Positions 9,300 to 12,200 of a stretch of DNA of 64,000 nt are shown here, piece by piece. A program made the position numbers and the translations under genes. Under the pieces are notes generated by a model. That model was not told the DNA's origin, ran no database searches, and worked only from the letters and a program-made list of their open reading frames with translations. The DNA is from Chrysemys picta bellii (Eukaryota). The stretch spans positions 9,796,001 to 9,860,000 of the forward strand of contig NC_088794.1 in the NCBI RefSeq assembly GCF_011386835.1, read 5' to 3'. Each line of letters opens with the position of its first letter. Within the stretch, counting starts at the first letter, position 1.

Positions 9300-12200
9300 T
9301 CACGCGGACGCTTGCCGAGCCTGGGTCTCCTCGTGACGCCGCATCCGCTGCTCCAGCTCTGGGCGGAAGTGACGGATCAGCCCCTGCAAGCAAGGAATGA
9401 GTGTGCAGGGCTGCCAAGGTAGCGCCCCACCCCCATCCTGCATCTGCCACCCACCCCTCACCACACACAGAGCAGCCCCCCAGATGTACCCCCGCATCTG
9501 CAGGAGCCTCTTCCCCCCAACTGCCCTTCTGCCAGGCTAGTTTATGAGCACATCCACCATCTACCCACACACCCCTTCCCTCTGCCAGGCCACCCCCTGC
9601 CCTGGTGCCCAGCCGCCCGCTACCTGCACAGGCCAGGCGGCCCCGTCGCCCAGGGCGCAGATGGTATGGCCCTCAATCTGCTTGCTGATCTCCCAGAGCG
9701 CGTCAATCTCGGCTGCCTGCGCGTTGCCTTGCACGAACCGCCACATCACCTTGTTCATCCAATCCACACCTGGGGGGTGGGCACCACAGCCAATCACAGC
9801 CCGCACGCCGGGGGGTGAGGCTCCATCCACAGAGCTGCCCTCCCCTGATCCCACCCACAGGCCCTGACAGCTGGGCATCATCCCGCCACACCACAGATCC
9901 AGCCAGTCCAGCATCCTCACCCCCAATCCCACCCATGGTCCCAGCTAGTTGGATATCCTCCCTCCCCCACCTTACCCCCAGTGACCCCAGCCAGCCCGCC
10001 CGGCATCCTCCCCACCACCCCCAGTGACCCCAGCCCGCCCAGCATCCTCCCCACCACCCCCAGTGACCCCAGCCCGCCCAGCATCCTCATCCCCCACCTC
10101 TGATCCCACCAATGGGCAGTCTGGCATATCTCCCCCCAGCCGTACCCAGATCAGCAGCAGCCCAGCTCCCAGCACTCACCCTCCCTGCAGGGGGTGCACT
10201 GCCCACAGCTTTCGTGCTTGTAGAACTCGATGAGGCGGGCGATGGCTCGGACAATGTCTGTCTGGGGGAGGAGGAGAGGGTGAGTGCCCTGCTGCAGGAA
10301 CCAGGCCAGCTGGCGGGGGGGGAGAGGGGGGTGCCACAGGGGGCGGGGGCCTTACCGATTTGTCCATGACGATGACGGCAGCTGTGCCGAGCCCAGTCTG
10401 CGCCTGCACCAGCCCGTCAAAGTCCATGGGCACCGTCTCACACACCGACTTGGGGATGAGGGGGGTGGAGGAGCCTCCTGGGATCACCGCCAAGAGGTTG
10501 TCCCAGCCCCCACGCACACCTCCTGCGCACAGAAGGGGCAGGGTTAGGCCTAGGCGCTCCCCCTCCCCACAGCAAACCAGATCCATGATGCCCAGTGCTG
10601 TCCCCTTCCCCCCAAGCCTCCTCCTAGTGCGACCTGCTACTCCAGGATCTGGGTGGAAGCGACGGATCAGCCCCTCTGCACAGGCCACAAGCAGGGTTAG
10701 CAGGCCAGCACCTGTCCCCCCCAGCCTTACTTTTGTAGGGCGAGCCACCCACAGCCGCAACAGCTGGAGCTAGACCTGTGGGGCAGCCCGGAGACGAAGT
10801 GGCCTAAGACGGGAAGAGGGGGGAGTCCAGCCCTGTCGCTCACCCAGCAGTCAGGGGAGGGCCAGGGTTTGGCATCTCACCCGCATGCTTCTCAATCAGC
10901 TCCTTGAGCGGCACCGACATCTCCTCCTCCACGGTGCAGGGCGTGTTCACGTGCCCGGAGATGTTGAAGAGCTTGGTGCCCGAGTTGCGTTCACGCCCAA
11001 AGCTGGCAAACCAGGCTCCCCCGCGCCGGCAGATGGTGGGCGCCACAGCCACCGTCTCCACATTGGCCACGGTAGTGGGGCAGCCGAACACGCCTGGGAA
11101 GGAGAGGGCAGTGACGTGGACACAGAGCAGGCTGGGTTATCCTGGTGCCCCCAAAAACAGTGTGAACCCCCTGCCCCACAAGCAGCTGGGCAGGGGGACC
11201 CAGCTAGAACACCACAGTCCCTCAGTCCCCTAAAGAGGGCAAGCGAACCCCCACTAAGGCACCCCCCATCTCCCCCACAACAGCACAGTTCCCCGGTGGT
11301 TCGTACCAATGTCAGCCGGGAAGGGCGGTTTGAGGCGTGGCTTGCCCTGCTTGCCCTCAATGGATTCGATCAGCGCTGTCTCCTCCCCACAAATGTAGGC
11401 CCCGGCGCCCCTCACCACAAACACGTCGAAGTCGTAGCCTGAGCTGCAGGCGTCTTTGCCCAGCAGACCTGCCTCATAGGCCTCGCGAATCGCCACCTGC
11501 AGGGAGACAGGTCAGCACAGCTGCTCCCCCGGCCCTGCTGCTCCACACCCACCTGGCCTGGCTCCCTGGCCTGCCTTGCCCTCTGTGCCCTGCAGAGAGA
11601 CTGGTCAGAGCAGCTGCTCCTGCCATCACAACCCCAGCCCTGCCCTCTGTGCCACATGGGGAAATGGGTCCAAATGGCAGTGGCTGCCCCCACCCCAAGC
11701 TCTGTGGATCAGTGCACCTGCTCCCCCTCTAGCTCCTGCTTACCTGCAGGTTGGAGGCTTCATTGTAGAACTCCCCACGGATGTAGATGTAGGCAGCCCG
11801 GGCCCCCATGGAGCGCCCTGCCACCAGGCAGCCCTCCACCAGCTTGTGTGGGTCATGGCGCATGATCTCGCGGTCCTTACAGGTTCCTGGCTCCCCTTCA
11901 TCCGCATTCACCACCAGGTACTTGGGCCTGGAACACAGACCCCATCGGACTGACCACAGCAGCCCTCCCCGCGTGAGCTACCATCCCACAGCAGACCCAG
12001 CTCCACTACCTTGCTGCCAGCAGAGAAGGCTCGTTGGGCCAGCACTGCCAGCTGTCCCCACCCCAGGGAGCCAATGGGACCCAGGCACGCTGCAGCTCAG
12101 CGGCCCCATGCCCTGCAATGGGACTGCCCCTGGGGTGGAGGTATTCTGGGAACGCTTGTTAGTGCTGGGGGCTTGCAGCCAGGATGTCTGGGTTCTATGC

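Follow-up and report, generated by a model that had tools for sequence, protein, structure and literature searches.

Intron 6 of NDUFV1, a gene on the minus strand of a 64-kb stretch of the painted turtle Chrysemys picta bellii (hereafter the window), contains a 52-nt patch that, judged from its letters and their arrangement, is a genuine copy of the gene's own exon 9/exon 10 boundary. In all likelihood the patch is an ancient and neutral templated insertion, shared by distantly related turtles and changing at the pace of the intron around it. Its join resembles a splice junction with two letters too many. Tentatively, we prefer to read it as a repair scar left by short copy-and-jump DNA synthesis in cis, which would have mimicked splicing; a template of spliced RNA is possible and is weighed below. 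All patch and gene coordinates are read on the minus strand.

Structure and significance of the patch

The host intron (10880-10523; 358 nt, GT..AG, phase 1) and the remaining gene model were verified from open frames and splice sites as well as from homologues named NDUFV1. The result agrees with the first-pass annotation of this DNA, which had drawn attention to the segment and placed it in intron 6, and its numbering proved correct. The description of the parts held as well. The patch opens with TGGCCTGTGCAG (10687-10676), which repeats exactly the final 12 nt of exon 9 (9635-9624). Two surplus letters follow at the join, AG (10675-10674), equal to the final two letters of intron 9 (9385-9384); the rest of this 240-nt intron (9623-9384) is missing from the patch, as had been claimed. 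The exon-10-like piece (10673-10636) corresponds to the opening 37 nt of exon 10 (9383-9347, exon 10 starting at 9383) with four substitutions and one extra C. The last of the substitutions, TAGC versus CAGC, lies at the 3' end.

Significance was assessed by local alignment scores against shuffled sequence and by BLAST within the window. The exon-10-like piece scored 53 against 17.6 +/- 2.5 for the shuffles (maximum 28), which bears out the reported resemblance to the start of exon 10, and BLAST within the window returned the exon 10 match at E = 3e-5 to 4.5e-5. As a free match, the exon-9-like 12-mer is not significant (score 24, shuffle maximum 26-30). Because the 12-mer alone falls within the shuffle range, it counts only through its position beside the exon 10 piece; the chance that TGGCCTGTGC or the 12-mer adjoins that piece is roughly 1e-4, with a few registers allowed for. 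TGGCCTG occurs five times in 4.2 kb of the gene and TGGCCTGTGC four times in the window. One native TGGCCTG (10707-10701) stands 20 nt upstream of the patch and repeats its first seven letters.

Directly upstream of the patch, the flank CCCTGCTTG (10696-10688) matches positions -12 to -4 of intron 9 (CCTTGCTTG, 9395-9387) at eight of nine letters, in a register that continues into GCAG. Matches of this type occur at a frequency of 1.6e-4 per position in the window, and the six flank positions that are invariant among turtles all agree with the end of intron 9. The flank may have been copied along with the rest, or it may be the microhomology from which copying was primed.

No poly(A) and no evident target-site duplication had been reported at the segment, and the flanks indeed show neither, nor a cryptic poly(A) signal. 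No further copy of the patch was found within the window. The first-pass annotation had also offered a relic of a duplicate that lost its intron; extended-homology tests lent this no support. Beyond the patch, comparison with the remainder of exon 10 and the 3' untranslated region gave scores within the shuffles in all three species, and no consistent result emerged when the 60-nt flank on the upstream side was compared to the entire intron 9 of the same and of other species. That flank matched best in the 5' part of intron 9, which is rich in G (p about 0.015); the match is absent in Chelonia and Carettochelys and was dropped as a composition effect.

Two features of intron 9 itself were recorded alongside. 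In its 5' part, GTGGCCTGGCAGAGGG (9576-9595) resembles the window version of the patch start, and the intron has GCCTGGCAGA(A/G)GG in two places; short matches are inflated by this local family of G-rich motifs.

Orthologous copies and age

Relatives were reached from single-exon open frames through named full-length proteins to their genomic loci, and exons were compared singly. The comparison set consisted of three turtle lineages (the window, Chelonia and Carettochelys), an alligator and a bird-like contig, with no pleurodire included.

The same place in intron 6 holds the patch in Chelonia mydas (L007; older assembly L009) and in Carettochelys insculpta (L006), where the surrounding intron aligns with that of the window at 92.7% and 73%, respectively. 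When each species' own exon 10 was aligned with its own intron 6, the scores were 53 in the window, 57 in Chelonia and 40 in Carettochelys, with shuffles at about 16 +/- 2.4. Chelonia mydas belongs to Durocryptodira and Carettochelys insculpta to Trionychia. From its presence in both groups, the insertion predates their split and is, as far as these loci tell, older than the deepest divergence among living cryptodires. This split is Jurassic, well over 100 million years ago.

A comparison of orthologous introns had been proposed both to date the insertion and to find the empty site. It succeeded in the first respect, through Chelonia and Carettochelys, and failed in the second. Intron 6 of Alligator mississippiensis (L008; L004 is identical) measures 177 nt and is not alignable with the turtle intron; its own exon 10 scored 20 against it, not above the shuffles (13.6 +/- 2.3, maximum 26). 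In the bird-like contig (L002), intron 6 is 68 nt long, too short to place the empty site, and the contig's own exon 10 likewise scored not above shuffles against it. A mammal-like metagenome contig (L001), which at the protein level departs from human-type entries, has a short intron 6 without the patch. A flank that seemed by eye to be shared between alligator and turtle (CTGGCCTG...TGCTGTGC.CAG) was dropped, its alignment being not above shuffles. Searches for additional turtles, by exact look-up of nine open reading frames and by a 29-base degenerate pattern in JGI metagenomes, returned no matches.

The letters of the patch also point to its source. At synonymous sites it carries the turtle states GGG, CTG and CGT, where the alligator and bird-like sequences have GGT/GGC, CTC and CGG/CGC, and it was therefore copied from the gene as it stood in the turtle lineage. 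Older exon states are kept in two cases: the Carettochelys patch has CCA versus CCG in the exon, and the Chelonia patch has CTG versus TTG in the exon. The patch is thus a small molecular fossil that preserves exon 10 states since lost from the exons.

The join across turtles

Seven letters stand between TGGCCTG and GGGCTG in each version of the join: TGCAGAG in the window, TGCGCAG in the new Chelonia assembly, TGTGCAG in the old Chelonia assembly and CAGGCAG in Carettochelys. All four versions are 20 nt long, compared with 18 nt for the true exon 9/exon 10 splice junction, and the 2-nt surplus is spelled differently in the window (AG) and in the other turtles. In the orthologous versions, the first 10 nt of the exon-9-like piece are common to Chelonia and the first 7 to Carettochelys.

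With Carettochelys as outgroup, this comparison makes GCAG before GGGCTG the older state. Since the outgroup points to GCAG, the window's exact 12-mer (TGCAG-AG) is probably a later change. GCAG is the end of exon 9 and also the end of intron 9, so it cannot discriminate between the two as sources. We also considered an indel model, with a 22-nt ancestor (TGTGCAG+GCAG) and three independent 2-nt deletions, and found it less likely than substitutions within a 20-nt form at the 8% divergence between window and Chelonia.

The two Chelonia assemblies (L007:4430 versus L009:33034) differ by a single C/T in the patch junction (TGTGCGCAG versus TGTGTGCAG). The difference falls at a CpG and may be a polymorphism or an assembly difference; CpG decay would account for it most simply.

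DNA or RNA as the template

In the scenario that we tentatively favor, a break or stalled fork would have arisen in NDUFV1 intron 6 in an ancestor of living cryptodiran turtles and would have been mended by short copy-and-jump synthesis, with DNA 1.0-1.3 kb downstream in the same gene as the template. About 40 nt, comprising the acceptor end of intron 9 and the start of exon 10, and about 10 nt from the end of exon 9 would have been copied, with a jump across the 240-nt intron 9 at or beside the TGCAG/G common to both of its borders (the slash marks the border). The product would imitate a splice junction, with two surplus letters. We infer that the template was DNA, and likewise the order in which the jumps took place.

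Several features argue for such an origin. The donor lies in cis, 1.0-1.3 kb away and on the same strand as the patch (sense orientation), and a nearby donor in cis is what DNA template switching commonly uses. Both borders of intron 9 read TGCAG/G in the window and in Chelonia (GCAG/G in Carettochelys), and therefore a DNA-level jump or deletion yields the same join as splicing; intron-shaped deletions have been documented to arise by way of microhomology between the borders of an intron (PMC3698931). The upstream flank counts for a DNA template because a spliced RNA would lack the letters of intron 9. Also on this side are the 2-nt surplus in all four versions of the join and a second 40-nt direct copy, with its members 1.34 kb from each other, elsewhere in the window.

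Several points weigh against a DNA copy-and-jump origin. No simple series of primed jumps gives the exact letters, the TG and GC at the internal joins being doubled rather than used once. The order of the pieces (a flank like intron 9, next the end of exon 9, and last the end of intron 9 with exon 10) is odd for a single pass of synthesis. The 8/9 flank match was noticed post hoc, and it presumes an ancestral intron 9 end like that of the window and Chelonia, whereas the intron 9 end of Carettochelys differs. The empty site was not found among the compared introns, which leaves the exact limits of the insertion unset. Moreover, a spliced RNA template accounts for the adjacency of exon 9 and exon 10 in one step.

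This last advantage belongs to the cDNA- or RNA-templated patch that the first-pass annotation had put forward. The part of that proposal concerning a copy of the gene's own exon 9/10 boundary stands; a spliced-RNA template is one of two live readings, given the 2-nt surplus, the intron-9-like flank, the TGCAG/G borders and the donor in cis. According to it, the gene's own spliced and perhaps tethered mRNA would have supplied the filler for a break in intron 6, with 12 nt from exon 9 and about 37 nt from exon 10. The mRNA would have been reverse-transcribed or used directly, in the manner of a class 2 templated sequence insertion, with a 2-nt slip (duplication of GC or TG) at or soon after insertion. 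We regard this as possible. The end of exon 9 does adjoin the start of exon 10, without the 240 nt of intron 9 between them, and a chance adjacency of TGGCCTGTGC has a probability of about 1e-4. One Chelonia allele, TGGCCTGTGTGCAG/GGGCTG, equals a clean junction plus one TG unit. The sense orientation, without poly(A) or target-site duplication, fits class 2 insertions (PMC5110952), and human cells are able to use mRNA as a repair template (PMC12065846).

Other observations fit an RNA template poorly. Two surplus letters are present in every version of the junction, and in the window the exact 12-mer is probably secondary. Eight of the nine flank letters agree with the end of intron 9, a sequence that spliced RNA lacks. 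The class 2 insertions described so far come from distant loci, and a donor in the same gene needs a cis effect that is hypothetical for ectopic patches. In addition, a true NDUFV1 retrocopy, that of Sceloporus (L005), looks quite different, with exons 6-10 fused at clean joins. Taken as a whole, a Mesozoic germline event by which the gene, transcribed and broken, would have filled the break with a captured fragment of its spliced mRNA seems to us somewhat unlikely.

A one-step DNA copy in cis is improbable. Here, about 41-50 nt spanning the intron 9 acceptor and the exon 10 start would have been copied at once, primed by the 8/9 microhomology that the broken end shared with the intron 9 end, and the 10-12 exon-9-like letters would be there by chance, as a small unrelated insertion or a local duplication. 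The local abundance of TGGCCTG (5x in 4.2 kb, once 20 nt upstream of the patch) is in line with this, as are the presence of GTGGCCTGGCAGAGGG in intron 9, which is like the window's version, and the failure of the 12-mer alone to rise above the shuffles; the flank match also makes a single microhomology-primed copy mechanically simple. However, TGGCCTGTGC is exact at this spot in both the window and Chelonia, with a chance of about 1e-4, and the model requires one more event, of 11 nt, placed just where the primer meets the copied block.

The choice of template matters. If the template was RNA, the patch would be a rare natural and datable trace, in the vertebrate germline, of a gene patched in cis with its own spliced transcript, and this trace would have been kept in turtle introns for well over 100 million years. 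So far, patching by a gene's own spliced transcript is known chiefly from yeast, from human cells in culture and from tumours. With a DNA template, as we tentatively prefer, the patch would be a cautionary case, in which TGCAG/G at both intron borders lets ordinary template switching yield a spliced-looking join. The DNA case would also bear on the debate over intron loss via RNA versus via microhomology.

Neutrality and putative exon signals

The identity of the patch to its Chelonia counterpart is 0.92, with the intron on either side at 0.92 and 0.95; for Carettochelys, the values are 0.71 for the patch and 0.72 and 0.70 for the intron on either side. With a rate of change that equals that of the surrounding intron, the patch looks neutral.

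The first-pass annotation had suggested that the segment supplies cryptic splice acceptors. Putative exon signals can be drawn from the window: a branch-point-like CTAAC (10700-10696), a CAG acceptor (10678-10676) and a GT donor (10633-10632), which would enclose 42 nt (10675-10634) that are open and in frame with exons 6 and 7. It is nevertheless very improbable that the patch was made into a selected element, be it a cassette or poison exon or a splicing decoy. The corresponding interval in Chelonia is 40 nt, which is out of frame, and a single residue is all that separates the isoforms annotated in Chelonia. The rate of change of the patch is that of the neutral intron. The sole RNA-like contig is collinear and runs unspliced through 10676/10674, so the idea of cryptic acceptors gained no support. 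An Rfam search of 10300-11150 gave only a chance sub-threshold match to a small nucleolar RNA. For annotation, the patch is best treated as neutral intron sequence with no sign of function.

A 197-codon open frame (10179-10769) takes in part of intron 6 with the patch, all of exon 7 and part of intron 7. It is a read-through of GC-rich sequence rather than a gene, and a protein search for relatives of the 197-aa product matched exon 7 only.

Support from reads and assemblies

Twenty public runs, which belong to 11 studies and carry four organism labels, support intron 6. The read evidence consists of contigs. Contig X15 (organism D) spans 10617-10873 with three differences, all outside the patch, and contig X16 (organism A) spans 10649-10799 and is identical; both cover the patch sequence unchanged. 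The X12 contigs end before the patch, and the word share of organism C over intron 6 is 0.79. The patch was also found in three independent assemblies of two other turtle species. An artefact of assembly or contamination, such as an admixture of cDNA reads, has next to no probability and is refuted by the read-run support, the independent contigs and the orthologous patches.

Other features of the window and of related loci

Intron 8 of NDUFV1 contains a 39-nt tandem repeat in four copies (9899-10107), with a unit that is C-rich on the plus strand and G-rich on the gene's minus strand. Elsewhere in the window, 38160-38199 and 39502-39541 (plus strand) form a second 40-nt direct copy, with 97.5% identity at a distance of 1.34 kb; this pair may be another case of short templated copying at close range, or it may mark where a small repeat element ends on either side.

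Among the related loci, Sceloporus undulatus L005:7100-7700 (GCA_019175285.1) is annotated as the 'NDUFV1-like' gene P0194 (226 aa). Exons 6-10 are fused there without introns and with a clean exon 9/10 join, and the locus is a 5'-truncated processed retrocopy annotated as a gene. Two gene models, P0394 (792 aa, Alligator L008) and P0390 (583 aa, Chelonia L009), have GST domains fused with NDUFV1 and appear to be annotation chimeras with the upstream neighbour.

Comparison with known systems

Processed retrocopies mediated by long interspersed nuclear elements (LINEs), such as that of Sceloporus undulatus (L005), share with the patch the presence of NDUFV1 exon sequence without intron. The Sceloporus retrocopy covers exons 6-10 over >400 nt with clean joins, whereas the patch has 52 nt, an imperfect join and no poly(A), and lies in its own gene. 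Of the hallmarks of a LINE retrocopy, namely poly(A), a target-site duplication and several fused exons, the patch has none, and its homology is limited to 12 + 37 nt.

RNA-templated repair of double-strand breaks within human cells restores or removes sequence where it stands (Jalan et al. 2025, PMC12065846). Its whole-intron deletions would parallel an RNA origin of the patch, with the gene's own spliced transcript as the template and an intron-less join as the signature. Unlike this in-place, homology-guided removal of an intron, the patch is ectopic, in intron 6 and without flanking homology, and the native intron 9 (9384-9623 in the window) has remained complete in all three turtles, with no whole-intron deletion.

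Also similar in form are the class 2 templated sequence insertions and templated sequence insertion polymorphisms (Onozawa & Aplan, PMC5110952). Like the patch, they measure tens of nucleotides, lack a target-site duplication and poly(A), are heritable, and have a transcribed donor with possible passage through spliced RNA. Class 2 insertions are known to include spliced cDNA pieces, and the RNA-derived patches described come from distant loci (PMC5110952). The patch differs in that its donor is the recipient gene itself, 1.0-1.3 kb off rather than distant, in that its join is not a clean exon-exon junction, and in its intron-like flank.

Two DNA-level systems resemble the copy-and-jump origin that we tentatively prefer. 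In microhomology-mediated intron loss (van Schendel & Tijsterman 2013, PMC3698931), as in the patch, donor pieces meet at a shared border homology, here TGCAG/G; in the patch, however, the 'loss' sits in an ectopic copy and the native intron is retained. From both this system and template switching, the patch is set apart by the doubling of shared letters at its joins and by a piece order unlike that of one pass. With local template-switch and microhomology insertions, as produced by microhomology-mediated break-induced replication (MMBIR), fork stalling and template switching (FoSTeS) and polymerase-theta end joining, the patch shares a short sense copy, a donor about 1 kb away in cis and an assembly from several short pieces.

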